Shown here: positions 48,001-59,582 of the stretch, piece by piece
Position numbering within the stretch: position 1 is the first letter of the stretch
Layout of the letters: every line of letters begins with the position of its first letter
From: Hyaloraphidium curvatum SAG 235-1
Taxonomy: Eukaryota > Fungi > Monoblepharomycota
Assembly: GCA_025558095.1 (NCBI GenBank)
Contig: JAIVFI010000040.1
Span: 186,001-250,000, forward strand
Direction of reading: 5' to 3'
DNA: 64,000 bases
The notes under the pieces: generated by a model
The model's database searches: none
What the model saw: only the letters and a program-made list of their open reading frames with translations
Told to the model about the DNA's origin: nothing
Translations under genes and position numbers: made by a program

Positions 48001-50642
48001 ATGGGCTGCGGGTGAGTGGCGCCGCGCCGCCCCCGCCCGCCGCCGCCCGCGCTGCTCCCGCCGGGGCGACCGCGGGGCCGCCGGCGGCCGGGCGGGGGCG
48101 CGCCCGCGGGGGACACCCCGCCCTTCTCCGGCCGGCCGCTGATGCGTCCCGCCGCCGCCCCCCGCCAGAGACACTATCAAGGCCAAGGTCATCGCCCACT
48201 ACACCGTTGACGTGAGTTGACGGCGCCCCCGCGGCGGCCGGACAGGCCGCCGCCGCCCCGCCCGTGCACCTGTGGCTGATCCACTCCCCCCCCCTCCCCG
48301 CCCCCTCCTGCGCCGCCGTGCCCCTTCCCGCATCCAGAAAAAGCCTCGGGACCCCAAGGCTATTGAGGCGGACCGCTGGTTCGCGTTCCCGCCCTCGTAC
48401 TACATCAACGAGAAGGTGCGTGACTCATGGCTGCTGGCGTGCGTCGCGGCCGCTCCAGCTCGCTGACGGTGCATTCCCCGCATCCGCATCGCATCCTTCC
48501 AGATCAATGGCCAGGGTGGCCAGATCTGCCGCATTCCCTTCAACCGCTGGGCCCTCATGCCGGCGGCGGTGATCATCCAGATGTGTGTCGGTACCTTCTA
48601 CGCCTGGTCCGGATACAACGCGGCCATCGACACCACCATCAACGGCAGCGCCGCCGCCGGTCTTGCTCCCAACACGTTCTACAGTGAGCATCGCGGGCGG
48701 CGTCGGATCGGCGTGCCGTCGCTGATCACTCGCCCCAGTCGCCGTCGCCTGCTTCGGTCCCTGCGCTGCCGTCTTCGGTCCCTGGATGGAGCGTGTCGGG
48801 CCCCGCACCGGTGCTTTCCTCGGTCTTTCCATGTACTACATCGGCCAGCTCCTCGCCGCCGTCGCCACCGTGACGAAGCAGCTCTGGCTCCTGTACATCG
48901 GCTACGGCATCATCGGTGGTGCTGGTCTCGGTGTTGCGTACATTTCCCCCGTGTCGCCCCTTCAGAAGTGGTTCCCCGACTGGTGCGTGCTCTCTCGGCG
49001 CTTCCGGGTCGCATGTTCTGATCCGTCTCGCGCAGGCGTGGCCTGGCCTCCGGTCTCGCCGTCGCTGGCTTCGGTGCTGGGTCGATCATTGCTCCCTTCG
49101 GTCAGAACGCGCTGATCCAAGCCAACGGCGGCAACCCCTGGCTCGCCTTCGTCGTGCTCGGCTCCGTCTACTGGGTCATCTCGGTGCGTTCATTGCATCG
49201 ATGCACGCCGACCGGCCGCTGACCTTGCATCTCCAGATGACCTGCGCGCTCGTGCTCCGTATCCCTCCCCCCGGCTACACCGTCAAGGGCATGACCGTCG
49301 ACACGATCAAGGGTGCCGACGCCGCTCTCAAGTCCGACGCCACCAAGGCCGCCGACGCCGCTGCGGCCGAGGCTGCCGTTGCCGGCCCCAAGGAGGAGAC
49401 CACCACGACCCTCGTCGAAGCCGCTGCTCTTTCCAACAACGCTGCCGAGGCCGAAGTCGCTCAGGTCGCCGCCAAGGTCGACATCGAGGCGCCCGCCCCT
49501 GCGCCCGCTGCAGGCGACATCAAGGTCGAGACCAAGGCCCGCACCCCCATCGAGATCCTGCAGAGCATGTCGCTCATCGACGCCGCCACGTCGTTCGAGT
49601 ACCGCCTCATGTACATCATGCTCTTCGGCAACTTGATGCTTGGTGCGTCGCATGCCCACTCACCACCTGCATGCGTACTGATGCATCCCCCGCAGGTCTC
49701 ACGACGATCTCGAAGCTGCAGGACATGTGCAAGAACCAGTTCGGCCGCTCGCCCACCGAGGCTGCCACCATCAACTCGATCAACTCGGTGTTCAACCTCG
49801 GCGGACGTGTCGGGTTCTCGCTCCTGTCGGACAAGATTGGCCGCAAGTCCGTCTACCTGATCACTCTCGGATCGCAGGCTATTATCCTTGGGTTCCTGCC
49901 CCTGGTCTTCAACAACCTTGTGCGTCTGCCGGGCGCGGATGCGCCGCGCGGCCGCTGACCCCCCATCCCCTTCAGGTCTACTGGGCCTTCCTGCTCTGCA
50001 TCTTCATCGTCTCGGCCGCCTACGGCTCCGGCTTCGGTGTCATCCCCGCCTTCCTTGCTGACATGTTCGGCGCCAAGAACGTCGGTGCCACCCACGGCAT
50101 CATCCTCACCACCTGGTCCATCGGCGGTGTGGTCGGCGTGCTCGTCTACAACAACATCCTCAACGTGCGTGACGCTGGGGGGTGTTGCGGTGATCGGAGC
50201 TGACTTTTGCGCGTTTCCGACCCCGGACCGCCCCCGACCCCTCCCGCGACCCCCCCAACAGTGGCAGGTCAGCATCTACGGCAAGAATGCACCCAACGTT
50301 TACAACATAAACTTCTACGCGAGTGACGCCTTTAGAATTTAGTTTTGCGATTCTGACCGGCGCTCCCTGCAGTGGCTCCTGCCCATCGCCATCATCGGCT
50401 TCCTTGTCACGCTCCTCATCAGGACGAACATTCGGGACCGCATCCTCCCGCGCCAGCCCGGGGAGATTGCCCGTATCCGCGTCGGCCGCTCGCTCACCTT
50501 CTGGAAGTCGCCTTGCACTTTCGAGCGCCTGTCGAGGGATGCCGAGGACAAATTGTGGAACGACTATCTGATGTCTCAGGTGGGCCGTTGTACGCGTTGA
50601 TTCCTTCATCCCGTGCTCATTCCGCACCTCCAGGGCATGTAA
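48001..50642 (+). CDS. MFS transporter, oxalate:formate antiporter (OFA)-like, many introns
   Basis: FNRWALMPAAVIIQMCVGTFYAWS; YISPVSPLQKWFPD; FNLGGRVGFSLLSDKIGRK; YGSGFGVIPAFLADMFG; last exon GGCATGTAA. Confidence 0.95.
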
Positions 50643-50795
50643 ACGTCCGGTTTCCGTGTTCGAGAGGTCGTTTTCGGGTGTTCTGTTCAAGGGTGATGTT
50701 AAGCGGCGCCAGCCGAAGTTGATGTGTAGACAAGCTCTCGGGCTTCAAAGTTGTTTCAATCAAAGGGCGATATGGGGGATTTCGAACTAGTTGAC
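50600..50795 (+). repeat. Degenerate direct repeat, copy 1 (MFS last-intron end, last exon, 3' UTR)
   Basis: ATTCCTTCATCCCGTGCTCATTCCGCACCTCCAGGGCATGTAAA... aligns with the sequence from 54342. Confidence 0.8.
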
Positions 50796-50986: not shown

Positions 50987-53399
50987 ATGGCGGGCGAGAA
51001 GCGCGGTCCCGACGCCGAGAACTCGGGCGGCCCTGAACAAGGTCCAAAGAAGGTTCGAGGAAACGATGACGGTCGGTCCGCGCGTTCTTGGAGATCTACT
51101 TTGGTGTCGGACGCTGACTGCTCGCCCTGTGCCCGCCACATGGCCGTCTTGCTTCTCGCAGCTGTCGCGGACACCATTGCTCCCCCTCGTTTCATTGCCC
51201 TGACTTCCAAGAACGTTACGGATCTCAAGAGGCAGTTCCGAACCAGCAAGAACGTTACCGAGGCCGGCATTGGCGACATGGAGTTCGTTTTGCTCGACAA
51301 CGCCAGCGCGACCGACAGGTCATGAAGATTGAAGACGTGCGCAAGATCTGGCAGGACCACAAGGCGCTTGGCCCTCAGAACCTCTTCATCGCCATCTGGT
51401 CCCTCCTTGCAAACACGCACAACCTGATTTGGACCGGTGCAGACTTTGAGCCCCCCGAGCACCACAACCTGGAGGACTGGGCGTCGCTCCCGGAGCCCAG
51501 GGCGCTCGACCGGGCCCAGATCGAAGAGCTGGCAGAGTCCCGGAACGTGCTCAAGAGTTCGGTGCTCGAGAGCGAGGTCATCCTGCTGGATCTCTCGGCG
51601 GCCAAAGACGACGGCGTGGTCACGTACAAGTACGACATCCTCCCGCACATGCAGTCCCGCGTCACTGCGGACATGGGAGCCGGCGGCGTCACCATCCCGC
51701 TCGTACAGGCCGTATGGGAACTGATGCGCAACCAAGGTCTTCTGGTCGGCGGTTTCGATGCCGAGGGGTCGAGGAGCCGAGCCATGCGGTCGTGGAAGCG
51801 AGAGGGCCGGGAAGACACTGATCGAGGTAAGTGTGCGCGAGGGGATCGAGTTCCCGAGCTAACAACCCACGTCCTTTGCAGACGGCTTTGTTGCCGACGA
51901 CAGCTTGCGCCCCGAGCTGGTCGAGATCGCCAAGCGCCGGTATTTCCAGCCCGCGACGGTCGCGGCCGTCGAGCGCATCCTCCTAGAGACGGCCGCCAAG
52001 AACAACGGTTTCCTGGGTCGGAACGGAGCATACGCGGCGGTGGCGGATGCCAAATTGCCTGCGGACCCCACACAGCCCCTCATCCACGACGTCCTCGTGC
52101 TGCTTCGCAATGCGGACCCGCCGCTCCTGCAGAGCCCGCCTTCGGGAGGTAGTCACACGACGGTCGACTACTCTCAGTTCCCGTTTCCGATCTGGACCGA
52201 GGACAATTTCTTTACGGGACCGGATCGGACGTTCCAGTCTGAGCTCGCCCTTTCCTTCGTGGACAACATCTTTGAGCGCGTGGTGGCGGCCCCCAACGCC
52301 GAAATGGGGAAGCTGCGAAGAACTTTCGACGCCGAGAAGCTCCAGCTGCTCGAGCTGCGCATCGCTGGCACGCGCACAATCCGCCTCCATGAGTTGGACA
52401 ACGCGGATCTCTCGATCAGGAAACCCGCGCGTGCAGCGCTGCTCGAGGTCATCAAGTCCTTCATCGACCTTTGCCGCGACCTGGGCAACAGCCAGATCCT
52501 GTTCGTGCTCACGGCCAAGGGGCGCAAGGTTGCTGCTCGGCTTGTCCAGCTGAACAAGCGCATCGGCCGGCTGCGTGAGCCCGAGAACGATCGGAGGGCC
52601 GCTCTCGGCATCACGTGCGCCAAGGCGGTCGTCGCGGAGTGCGAGCGACTCCTGGCCGAGGGCCGCGTGAATCCGCCGCTCAGGCCCATGTACGCGGCCA
52701 CTCCCGGTGGCTTCACGCCGATTCAGATCTATCCTTCGGGCTTCCAAGTCGACGGCTTCTTCCAGGCGCGGATGCGCATCTCGAAAACCATGCGGCACGG
52801 CGAAGACGGCAGCCAGTACCGGTGAGGCTGGAATGCGCTGCACCAGACCCAATTGATCCTCACCCGCATCACTACAGGATCCACATTCTGGACGAGATCG
52901 AAGATTTGATCCGGTACATCTACGGCTTTTGCTCCGGCCGCCTCGAGCTTGCCTGGGCCGAGAACAAGGAGTACCACTCGTGGGACGAGGACGCGCCGCG
53001 TTTCCGCCCTTTCAAGCGAAGTTCCTTCGTCGACGGCGTCGACCGCTATGCGTTCGTCATTGCGCAGGAGCTCAAGCAGTTCATCGTGGCCGACGGTGAT
53101 CGGGCTGCCTGGCGTTCCGGTGAGGTTCTCTCTTTCATTCCTCACGGCCATACTTCTGACGCAGTTCCATGGTAGACGCCACCATGGACTCGATTGGCGC
53201 TGCGATTCTCCCTGTCTGCAGCGCGCTGCCGCAGTTCTTTGCGTCGTTGCAGAAGAAGGAGGACGTCGTCATGAGCGAGCCCGGGGACGAGATCAAGCAG
53301 GAGGCGCGTCACGTGAAGCTCGAGGACGACGGCGCGGACGACATCATCGAGATCCTGGACGACGACGAGGAGGAGGACGACGATCTCATCGAACTCTGA
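50987..53399 (+). pseudogene. Orphan ~700-aa spliced gene with three internal repeats; one frameshift near 51318 (pseudogene or sequence error)
   Basis: Canonical introns; GC3 bias; repeat E.(I/V)LL..A...(P)L...(V/I)W.LL.N three times; acidic C-terminus DIIEILDDDEEEDDDLIEL. Confidence 0.6.
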
Positions 53400-54341: not shown

Positions 54342-54520
54342 ATTCCATCATCCCGCGCTGATCTCCGCACGTTGCAGGGCATGTAAAACGGCTTCCGGAC
54401 GTCGAGTGCTTGTTTCCGGGTCGCGGTTTCCGTGAAGTGTTGTCGATAGACCAAACAGTCGGCGAGTTCGTTCGTTCGAGCCATGTAAAAGTGTGGGGGT
54501 TTCTTTCGGGGTTTGACATA
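54342..54520 (+). repeat. Degenerate direct repeat, copy 2 (duplicate MFS acceptor, GGCATGTAA exon and UTR)
   Basis: ATTCCATCATCCCGCGCTGATCTCCGCACGTTGCAGGGCATGTAAA...CGGCTTCCGGACGTCGAGTGCTTGTTTCCGGGT. Confidence 0.8.
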
Positions 54521-54866: not shown

Positions 54867-55667
54867 TCACCCCGCGGCCTCGCCCCGCAGCCCGTCCAGG
54901 AACTCGGCGATGAACCGGTCCATCCTCCTCCTCTCGTCCCCTCCCGGGCTCCTCAGCAGGTACTCCACCCCCCTCTCCACCATCCACCCCCCCATCCGCG
55001 CCAGGAACTTCCAGTCCTCCCCCGACATGCCAGACACCTCGACCCCCGGCTCGGCGAGCAGCATCCTCAGCCCGTCCGCGGCCGACGCGGCCCTCGCGCC
55101 GTACACGGCGAGGTCGGCGGGGGACAGGCGGTTCCAGTGCGCGCGGTAGAGGTACCCGAAGGCGATGCGGAGGCGGATGCCGCGGGGGAGGAGGGCGGAA
55201 CGGTGGAAGGCGAGGGTGGATTCGGTGCACGAGGGGCCGCAGTCGCCGTCCAGCTGGTGGCCCGAGGATCGGTGGCACGGTTGGTACGTCTGGTAGAGCG
55301 TGAGCACGGTGCCTGGAGGGGAACGGGCCAGGGCCGCCAGGAGAGCGGGGTCGCGGAACGCGAACTCCTCGGCGTGCGTCCGGTTGCCGGCGGCGCAGTT
55401 GGTGTACCGCCCCACAAAGTCGGGACGGCCGGGAGCGCGGAGCACGGCGACGACGGTAGCGGATTTCCTGGCACAGGGCCTGCCGGTCCGCATGCACCGC
55501 TCGCGGACGCCTGCCTCGGCCGAGGGCTCGACGTGCCAGAACGAGGCGCAAAAGTCGTCCTCGCCGTTGAGCAGCCGCTCCTTGCGGGAGACGTGCGGCT
55601 GCGGCGCGCCCCAAACGGATGGCGGCGAGCAGTCGCCGGGGCAGGAGGTGACCGAGGTGGCGGCCAT
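54867..55667 (-). CDS. AID/APOBEC-like zinc-dependent deaminase, intronless, 266 aa
   Basis: YTNC...THAEE; LTLYQTYQPCH...SC; LRIAFGYLYRAHW; DGLRMLLAEPGVEVSGMSGEDW. Confidence 0.85.
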   Translation of the reverse strand: MAATSVTSCPGDCSPPSVWGAPQPHVSRKERLLNGEDDFCASFWHVEPSAEAGVRERCMRTGRPCARKSATVVAVLRAPGRPDFVGRYTNCAAGNRTHAEEFAFRDPALLAALARSPPGTVLTLYQTYQPCHRSSGHQLDGDCGPSCTESTLAFHRSALLPRGIRLRIAFGYLYRAHWNRLSPADLAVYGARAASAADGLRMLLAEPGVEVSGMSGEDWKFLARMGGWMVERGVEYLLRSPGGDERRRMDRFIAEFLDGLRGEAAG

Positions 55668-56013: not shown

Positions 56014-57480
<1,467 letters not shown>

Positions 57481-57505: not shown

Positions 57506-59321
57506 CTACCTCCCGCCCTTAACATCCTCCTCGACCGCCCGTGCGTAGAGCTCCTGCAGCCTCTCTGTCACCGGCCCCCTCCCCCCCTCCCACGATTCCC
57601 CCTCCCCGATCACCCGCCCGTCGATAACCCCGACGGGCGTCAGCCCCGCGAACGTGCCGGTTACAAAGGCCTCCTCGGCCGAGTACGCCTGCGCGAGCGT
57701 GATGTCCGCTTCCCGGAACGGGATCCCGTTCTCGGCGCACAGGCGGAGGACGTTGGCACGGGTGATCCCTGGCATCTGGTACTTTGCGTGCGGCGCGAGC
57801 ACCACCCCCTTCCGCACCACCATGAAGTTGGTCGAGTTGCAGGTGGCGATGAAGCCGTGCGGATCCAGCATCAGGCTCTCGTCTGCGCCCGCGCGGTTGC
57901 CCTGGATGCTGGCCGCGATGCAATTCAGCTTGCTGTGAGAGTTGAGCTGCGGGTCTTGCACGTCTGGATACCCTCGCCGCACGTGGCACGTGTGCAGCTT
58001 TATGCCCTTGGCCTTGGCCTCGGCGGGGACAAACTTCCATTCGGGGACGATGACCACGGTCGGCTTGCCCGCCGTCGCCGCCGGGTTCTGGAACAGCTTG
58101 GTCTTCAGCCCCCTCGTGACCATCACGCGGATGTGCACCCCCGACGCCCCGCGCATGCCGTTGGCGTCGGCCGTTCGGTACACCATCCCCCGGAGCTCGT
58201 CCTTGGTCATCCCCGGGCGCATGTCGAGGGCCTTCATGCCCTCCCAGAGGCGGTCGGCGTGCGCGGACCAGAAGGCCAGGGCGCCGCGGTGCAGTCGCAC
58301 GCCTTCCCAGACGCCGTCGCCTAGCACGAACCCGGCGTCGAAGACGGGGACACGGGCGAGGGGGCGGTGCACCAGGTCGAAGGCTGTAGAAGGGGCGTGT
58401 CGGCGAAATGAGAGGCGTTTTGTGAAGGAGACGAGCAAACCCACTGTCGAGCACGCCGTCGCGTGTGCCGACCATGATGTCCGCGTTCCGAGGGTCGTCC
58501 AGATAGTTGTGCGTCCCGCCCGCCTGCTTTGGCCCCGCATCCGGCGCCTCGATCCTCCCCGGCCGGAGCGCCCTCCTCCTTAGCAGCTCAAAGATGGGCC
58601 AGCACATGTCCAGGACCCCCTTGAGCTCCTGCGGTACCTCCTCCTCCCTCTCACCCTCCGGCGCTTCGAATCCCGTGCTGGCGTGCGTCCGCGCATAGAA
58701 ATAGGGCGCCCACGGCCCGTCGAACTCCTTCGGCCCCGCGGGCCACGAGAGCATCGCCGGATCGAACGGGATCCCCAGCCTCCCGCACAGCAGCCTCAGC
58801 GTCTCCTCCGGATGCGCCGCCAGATCGTCCGAAAGCACAACCGGCACGTCCTGCCCCGCCGCCTCGGCCGCCGCGAGGATTTCGAGCGCGGCGGGGAACC
58901 CGGATTCCTGCAGCGACACGGGGAGCACCTTGCCGAAGGAGCGGAGGACAGCCAAGGGGTGGCGCACGAGGAGAAAGTGCCGCACCGCGGTTCCCGAGGG
59001 GAGCTGGCCCGAGGGAGGGAACAGCAGCGCGTGGGGGGCGGCGACCTTGTGCTTGGTCATCTGCTTGGCGAACAGGATCGGTTTGCGCTTCGGGACGAGG
59101 GCGGCGGCGGCAACGGCGCCGTCGGCCGGTTGACTCGCGAGCACTGCATCGCGGTACGGCCGGTCGAACCCCGTGAGTTGGAGGAAGGAAGCGTAGAGGG
59201 GCTCGTCGGCCACTTCGCAGTCGGCGCGGCGGGAGAAGGAGTACATGAGCGCCGTGGAGAGGCAGCGGGGGGAGGACCAGCAGTGGATCGTCAAGGGAGT
59301 GGGGGCTGACGGGGATGCCAT
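57506..59321 (-). CDS. Branched-chain aminotransferase-like fusion (sulfotransferase-like domain + class IV PLP aminotransferase)
   Basis: WSSPRCLSTALMYSF...DEPLY; then DAGFVLGDGVWEG; LNSHSKLNCI; GITR; EEAFVTGTFAG; one intron near 58386-58445. Confidence 0.93.
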
Positions 59322-59582
59322 CTTCTGATCGGCAAGATAAATGGGGCTGGAGGTGCGGGGAGGCAGGAGCGGGGAACGCGTCGTGGCGGCGTCGCCGCGG
59401 TTCTGAAGACGCCTCTCGAGGGCAACCACCCCCGTGAATAAAACCTAAAGATCAATGAGCTCGTGTTCCAGGTCCGAGTCGCGTTCCCAGAGCCAGAAGA
59501 TGCCTAGGATTCCGGGGAAAACTTCGAGGAGTGATGCTTCCAAACCCTTTCCCATATTCCCCATTCGCGTGGCGGGGGAGCG

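Follow-up and report, generated by a model that had tools for sequence, protein, structure and literature searches.

An intact AID/APOBEC-type deaminase gene in the fungus Hyaloraphidium curvatum, with relatives in chytrids and on virus-like contigs

Results and discussion

The deaminase locus

The window analysed here comprises 64,000 nucleotides of the Hyaloraphidium curvatum SAG 235-1 assembly (contig JAIVFI010000040.1, positions 186,001 to 250,000), and coordinates given without a locus name refer to positions within this window. An uninterrupted ORF is located at 54867-55667 on the minus strand, encoding 266 amino acids followed by a stop codon. The translation contains no internal stops and the gene is intronless, as the original prediction had held. 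The open frame extends a further 100 codons upstream of the ATG, with no additional in-frame ATG in this region. The ORF has a GC3 of 0.92, and its synonymous codon use correlates with that of the neighbouring host genes (r=0.89); we therefore consider it a real, host-adapted coding sequence. No deaminase paralogues were found in the 31.9-Mb, 55-contig assembly, making this a single copy gene.

The protein contains YTN (residues 88-90), HAE (98-100), YQPCH (128-132) followed after 13 residues by SC (146-147), LRIAFGYLY (166-174), a GL pair starting at G199, GVEV (208-211), M214 and DW (218-219). All motifs listed in the original prediction are present at the spacing given there. The Hyaloraphidium gene is intact and encodes an AID/APOBEC-type enzyme.

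The assembly is fungal, as shown by its chitin synthases of class 1 and by 96 matches to Zn2Cys6. The deaminase gene is located on a contig of 476,666 bp (~477 kb) that carries six of the Zn2Cys6 matches, and there is no composition or GC break around it. An intron-containing cdc42-like gene, recognised from ORF pieces and sequence, is found at 56014-56873 on the same (minus) strand, and its stop codon precedes the deaminase ATG by 346 bp; we regard this gene as context and not as part of the system. Beyond cdc42 lie a sulfotransferase-aminotransferase pair and THO2. In the pair (57506-59429), 1.8 kb from the deaminase, Aminotran_4 comes after Sulfotransfer_5 in the same orientation, in a plant/bacterial-style fusion that is possibly the product of another transfer.

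A "rearranged accessory block" had been proposed to adjoin the deaminase. A direct duplication does exist, in the form of a single 80 bp copy pair with 76% identity (50600-50679 and 54342-54421, the latter on the plus strand; E 3e-9), detected by gapped alignment and missed by an exact-repeat search. The first copy (50600-50679) is the last-exon region of an MFS gene, and the duplication covers the end of the last intron, the terminal exon and the 3' region of this gene, brackets 3.7 kb, and is both old and small. No link between the duplicated block and the deaminase was found, the gene being located ~450 bp outside the duplication, which we treat as context only. An orphan coding region at 51322-52825 is single copy and has a high GC3; no Pfam or Atlas match was obtained for it, and a single-sequence model proved unusable.

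Profile and fold assignment

The deaminase gives a Pfam APOBEC_N match of 27.2 bits (cut-off 25), with weaker matches to APOBEC4, SNAD4 and NAD1. Within an alignment of 92 relatives, APOBEC4 is matched by 44 and APOBEC_N by 41. A PDB sequence search using the single protein as query gave no match, and a search with the family profile gave weak APOBEC matches only. An AF2 model built on the 92 relatives has a pLDDT of 90.6, and every match listed by Foldseek against the PDB is an AID/APOBEC protein. The structural scan (VIA) is led by APOBEC3H (Z 17.1, rmsd 2.8 with 182 residues aligned), AID (Z 16.8), APOBEC3G, APOBEC1 and APOBEC2, in that order, with APOBECs overall scoring Z 13-17. This comparison had been named beforehand as a check on the AID/APOBEC identity, which is borne out by the Pfam match above cut-off, the fold searches and the conservation of the motifs, and which we consider virtually certain. 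A free-nucleotide or tRNA deaminase (CDA, dCMP deaminase or Tad2/3) would have the HxE / PC..C zinc core in common with this protein, but is very improbable given that the best such structure reaches only Z 7.0 and that the deaminase possesses the loop-7 aromatic and terminal helices.

Among the Atlas predicted structures, TM values of 0.80 and 0.76 were obtained to APOBEC4/APOBEC4-like clusters (the cluster at 0.76 being mostly cnidarian), compared with 0.67 to APOBEC4 and 0.56-0.61 to APOBEC1-3-like clusters. A feature search of the Atlas adds a haptophyte-rich cluster as a neighbour, and a shorter, mostly bacterial cluster is also listed as a more distant one. The BFVD viral fold search returned distant dCMP deaminases only.

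Active site and putative metal sites

All conservation counts refer to the alignment of 92 relatives. The H98-A-E100 motif (55368-55376, minus strand) corresponds to the catalytic zinc ligand and proton-shuttle glutamate, with H98 present in 96% of relatives and E100 invariant. The catalytic zinc cysteines, C131 (98%) and C147 (100%), are part of P130-C131-H132...S146-C147 (55227-55280, minus strand) and are separated by 15 residues that form a loop-5 insert, ranging from 7 to 25 residues across the family. The complete H98/E100/C131/C147 set occurs in 88/92 relatives. N90, a predicted cytosine contact in loop 3 located 8 residues upstream of H98, is present in 91%. Strand 4 and loop 7 (55134-55172, minus strand) contain the aromatic Y174, which is predicted to select for pyrimidines, and after it R175 and W178, with conservation of 98% (Y/F), 99% (R/K) and 91% (W), respectively. 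From its motif position, we take Y174 to be the equivalent of APOBEC3A Y130. Both model and alignment place the G199 helix, strand 5 with E210 and the terminal M214, and D218-W219 at 55011-55073 (minus strand). In the AF2 model, the strand spans residues 209-213 with M214 at its end, and helices are formed by residues 216-224, 228-239 and 241-265. W228 is present in the Hyaloraphidium deaminase and is not conserved in the family.

Two N-terminal sets of metal-type residues were absent from the earlier motif list. C40, H45, C58 and C65 (55473-55550, minus strand) constitute a predicted second metal site within a loop-1 insert of the cnidaria-algae type, found in 86/92 relatives, and may bind metal. 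C9, C13 and H25 (55593-55643, minus strand) are a possible third site, with C91 (55395-55397) completing a set that would match the described APOBEC4 arrangement. The N-terminal C9/C13/H25 motif occurs in 38 relatives, all of which also have C91; this co-occurrence was not significant in a tree-corrected independent-pairs test, which is underpowered. Inspection of the first 30 residues revealed no hydrophobic stretch indicative of an N-terminal signal peptide.

Comparison with known deaminase groups

A clade linking cnidarian and algal deaminases with APOBEC4 has been described, with members in Nematostella, Micromonas and Emiliania (Iyer 2011, PMC3239186; Krishnan 2018, PMC5889660), and the Hyaloraphidium protein in all likelihood belongs to it. 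Common features are the HxEE motif (HAEE, residues 98-101), the inter-cysteine insert, the loop-1 insert of metal-binding type, the Glu in strand 5 (E210) with a Met at its end, and the D-aromatic pair of the next helix (D218-W219). The clade is also the source of the best Atlas structural neighbours. In contrast to the members listed in PMC3239186 and PMC5889660, the host here is a fungus, and members on giant-virus-like contigs are likewise absent from both. Nematostella has a tandem expansion, whereas the Hyaloraphidium deaminase is single copy. A haptophyte, Prymnesium, is a member of the family and is included in the trees.

Vertebrate APOBEC4 (PF18775) has a similar set of C, C, H and a loop-3 C, and the TM of 0.67 extends over 216 residues. 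However, the Pfam match is weak and below cut-off (19.7 vs 27.2), and the CxxxxxC of APOBEC4 helix 3 is absent, with 15 residues between the catalytic cysteines instead; the deaminase additionally possesses C40/H45/C58/C65. It was therefore not assigned to APOBEC4 proper. The fold (Z 15-17), catalytic residues, loop-3 Asn and loop-7 aromatic are held in common with AID, APOBEC1 and APOBEC3, but the identity is only 14-19% and the Hyaloraphidium protein carries an extra N-terminal insert. Membership of the core vertebrate AID/APOBEC1-3 group was rejected on the basis that there is no strand-3 Trp, no SxS before PC and no PCxxC, strand 3 reading LYQTYQPCH. The secreted SNADs and dictyosteliid AADs were set aside as no N-terminal signal peptide was seen. 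The OTT_1508-like proteins, proposed to act in defence against selfish elements and viruses (Iyer 2011, PMC3239186), are likewise fungal deaminases, but belong to a different clade that is expanded, fused to an alpha+beta domain and marked by GxxK before CxxC, none of which is seen in the Hyaloraphidium deaminase.

Relatives in chytrids, algae and on virus-like contigs

An exhaustive search yielded 287 related clusters at 50% identity. The best matches of the Hyaloraphidium protein are marine metagenome proteins (~42% identical), with the chytrid clade at 31-32%. The few named members come from Prymnesium parvum, Boothiomyces sp. JEL0866, Globomyces pollinis-pini and Globomyces sp. JEL0801. 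The Rhizophydiales chytrid proteins are KAJ3325935.1 (P0195), KAI8892828.1 (P0078) and KAJ2985044.1 (P0196), with a locus at L012:8001-8702, and in GenBank the Globomyces pollinis-pini copy has already been labelled "APOBEC-like" by automatic annotation. The gene of Boothiomyces has no introns and is flanked by VPS4 and HSP70, on a contig of 414 kb. The Boothiomyces and Globomyces copies establish that the family is present in fungi besides Hyaloraphidium. The earlier statement that this is not a standard fungal gene thus agrees with the literature, but the gene is not unique to one fungus.

Several relatives are located on contigs of 14-235 kb that are densely packed with intronless genes, are of both marine and freshwater origin (loci L019, L018, L014, L009, L016, L108, L004-L007 and L102), and have a gene complement suggestive of large DNA viruses. 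One set of genes comprises RPB2, ERV1 and an RPB1 that is strongly divergent, while another contig has an EsV-1-7 repeat protein. Others carry an RNR small subunit with eIF3g and ClpP, topo II with ClpP and UCH, PNK with dUTPase, or a protelomerase. No capsid gene was seen in the 10-20 kb stretches examined around family members, and since the designation derives from gene content, we call these contigs virus-like without further classification. Their deaminases are candidate virus-encoded APOBEC-like enzymes. Pattern scans of IMG/VR, of low sensitivity, gave no confirmed relative, and neither a prokaryotic genome scan nor a phage tblastn, also of low sensitivity, revealed bacterial or phage members. 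A search of the Hyaloraphidium genome for an NCLDV capsid, run without a positive control, gave no match. One virus-like contig has two copies of the deaminase together with its neighbours, inverted relative to each other (L007:9120-17327); this may be a genuine inverted repeat or an artefact of long reads. The same contig has an ATG9 autophagy gene adjoining an aspartic protease (L007:1136-2596).

Origin of the fungal copies

Three trees were computed, of which the 71-row tree is a quick tree; sequences that were partial or nearly identical to others had been removed, and the outgroup was called animal-like from a weak Pfam match and its appearance. Boothiomyces, Globomyces and four environmental sequences form a six-member clade (support 100/98) that joins Prymnesium and marine sequences (97/92), rather than the Hyaloraphidium protein or the outgroup. 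The Hyaloraphidium protein itself has a long branch and a sister without support, and virus-like sequences occupy at least two places in the tree. When all fungal copies are constrained to a single clade, the log-likelihood drops by 8.6 units; the AU test does not reject this arrangement (p=0.33).

Transfer is favoured by the way in which algae, viruses and fungi are intermixed in the trees, and we consider it probable that the deaminase was acquired horizontally rather than inherited from an opisthokont ancestor. The original suggestion of a possible horizontal acquisition is thus plausible, but with fungal monophyly at p=0.33 it stops short of proof: two transfers, one transfer or ancient inheritance of the fungal copies are each plausible. 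Vertical descent from an ancestor early in the opisthokonts or in the fungi, followed by loss in most fungi, appears less likely yet merits serious consideration. The family occurs in at least two zoosporic lineages, a single fungal clade passes the AU test, codon use is fully host-like, and an opisthokont-amoebozoan origin with fungal loss is an option put forward by Krishnan 2018 (PMC5889660). This is opposed by the siding of the six-member chytrid clade with Prymnesium and marine sequences, by the higher identity of the Hyaloraphidium protein to marine metagenome sequences than to those of chytrids, and by the lack of introns in both fungal loci examined. That the gene is a contaminant or misassembled algal fragment, a notion its intronless state might encourage, is extremely improbable given its long contig with six Zn2Cys6 genes, cdc42 only 346 bp away, the absence of a GC break, host codon use and independent chytrid homologues.

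Proposed mechanism and role

In deaminases of this type, a zinc-activated water attacks C4 of a flipped-out cytosine. By analogy, H98, C131 and C147 of the Hyaloraphidium protein would hold the zinc ion that activates the water, with E100 shuttling the proton, while N90 and the loop-7 aromatic Y174 would hold the flipped-out cytosine of a single-stranded DNA or RNA during C-to-U conversion. The one or two extra metal sites may shape loop 1, thought to set the target context. A loop-7 aromatic restricts the pocket to pyrimidines (PMC5889660). C-to-U deamination of single-stranded nucleic acid, whether DNA or RNA, is the likely reaction, and the enzyme is probably active on polynucleotide cytosine. 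In E. coli, invertebrate AID/APOBEC relatives belonging to other clades act as mutators (PMC5956068).

The deaminase may have an antiviral role. Zoosporic fungi host giant viruses (PMC13533422) and the family is present on virus-like DNA, and large DNA viruses are for these reasons the best remaining candidate target. We tentatively propose that the enzyme is a mutator acting against invading DNA, most plausibly that of large DNA viruses, and that the family has been passed among aquatic eukaryotes and giant viruses. The fold, the intact catalytic residues and the family membership are established. Taken as a whole, this reading of the gene is more likely than not, with the specific role as a mutator of invading DNA rated somewhat below even odds.

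A somewhat unlikely alternative accepts the same family assignment, with the protein acting as a conserved cellular editor, or as a non-mutagenic APOBEC2/APOBEC4-like binder, at a specific host RNA or DNA site. Single copy without expansion goes with conserved functions rather than arms races (Krishnan 2018, PMC5889660), and APOBEC4, the closest characterised relative, shows no activity when assayed as a mutator in E. coli (PMC5956068); together with the single Hyaloraphidium copy, this keeps a conserved or non-mutagenic role in play. Housekeeping neighbours both here and in Boothiomyces, a core that is very conserved across distant hosts, and the lack of a retroelement footprint (see below) point the same way. 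However, the patchy spread of the family and the presence of virus-like contigs in several places in the tree fit a conflict gene better.

Retroelement editing

The original prediction had included anti-transposon editing, and the genome is rich in young retroelements, with Gypsy, copia and other RT copies that are almost identical to one another (loci L021-L100), most with open RT frames. Pairwise comparison of private changes in 78 retroelement copies from five clusters revealed no strand-biased G-to-A editing, with 204 G-to-A vs 224 C-to-T changes (p=0.36). There are no G-to-A runs either, the longest being 6, the same as for A-to-G. Private transitions are enriched at CpG on both strands. 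This symmetric, CpG-concentrated pattern resembles methyl-cytosine decay rather than APOBEC editing, and suggests CpG methylation in the genome without RIP-like or APOBEC-like editing of retroelements. A single copia copy has 14 G-to-A vs 3 C-to-T private changes (p=0.013 uncorrected), which, along with the abundance of young elements, might favour an anti-retrotransposon mutator akin to APOBEC3 on endogenous retroelements. With the symmetric counts and mostly open RT frames, such a role is improbable, and for the sampled families it is largely refuted.

Implications

Animals use the AID/APOBEC family to mutate viral DNA. Krishnan 2018 (PMC5889660) places the family in animals, slime moulds and some algae, with fungi drawn as having lost it and the algal copies explained by transfer from cnidarians. 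In the searchable literature, mostly non-subscription, we found no prior report linking APOBEC with chytrids, early-diverging fungi, giant viruses or mirusviruses. The cnidaria-algae-APOBEC4 clade itself is known; new relative to the literature searched is that it extends to fungi and to giant-virus-like contigs. The occurrence of the family in no fewer than two zoosporic lineages of fungi, as well as on several contigs of giant-virus-like type, would redraw its map and offer viruses as a carrier. A more speculative extension is that zoosporic fungi possess a working APOBEC-type mutator against large DNA viruses, and that giant viruses shuttle the family between algae, animals and fungi. If true, symbioses with cnidarians would not be the source of the algal copies, and viruses would themselves employ an APOBEC-like enzyme. 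These implications are tempered by the clade being known, by one chytrid copy having been labelled "APOBEC-like" already, and by the function being a prediction. As chytrids are culturable and their giant viruses are now known (PMC13533422), deaminase-based antiviral defence becomes testable in fungi.

As a compact enzyme from an uncharacterised APOBEC4-related clade, the Hyaloraphidium deaminase is a possible handle on APOBEC4 function and a base-editor candidate. Relatives of ~550 aa (P0191, P0192 and P0088) have a pair of deaminase domains in tandem. The second domain of P0191 is without the HxE histidine and the PC cysteine, resembling the active/inactive pair of APOBEC3G.
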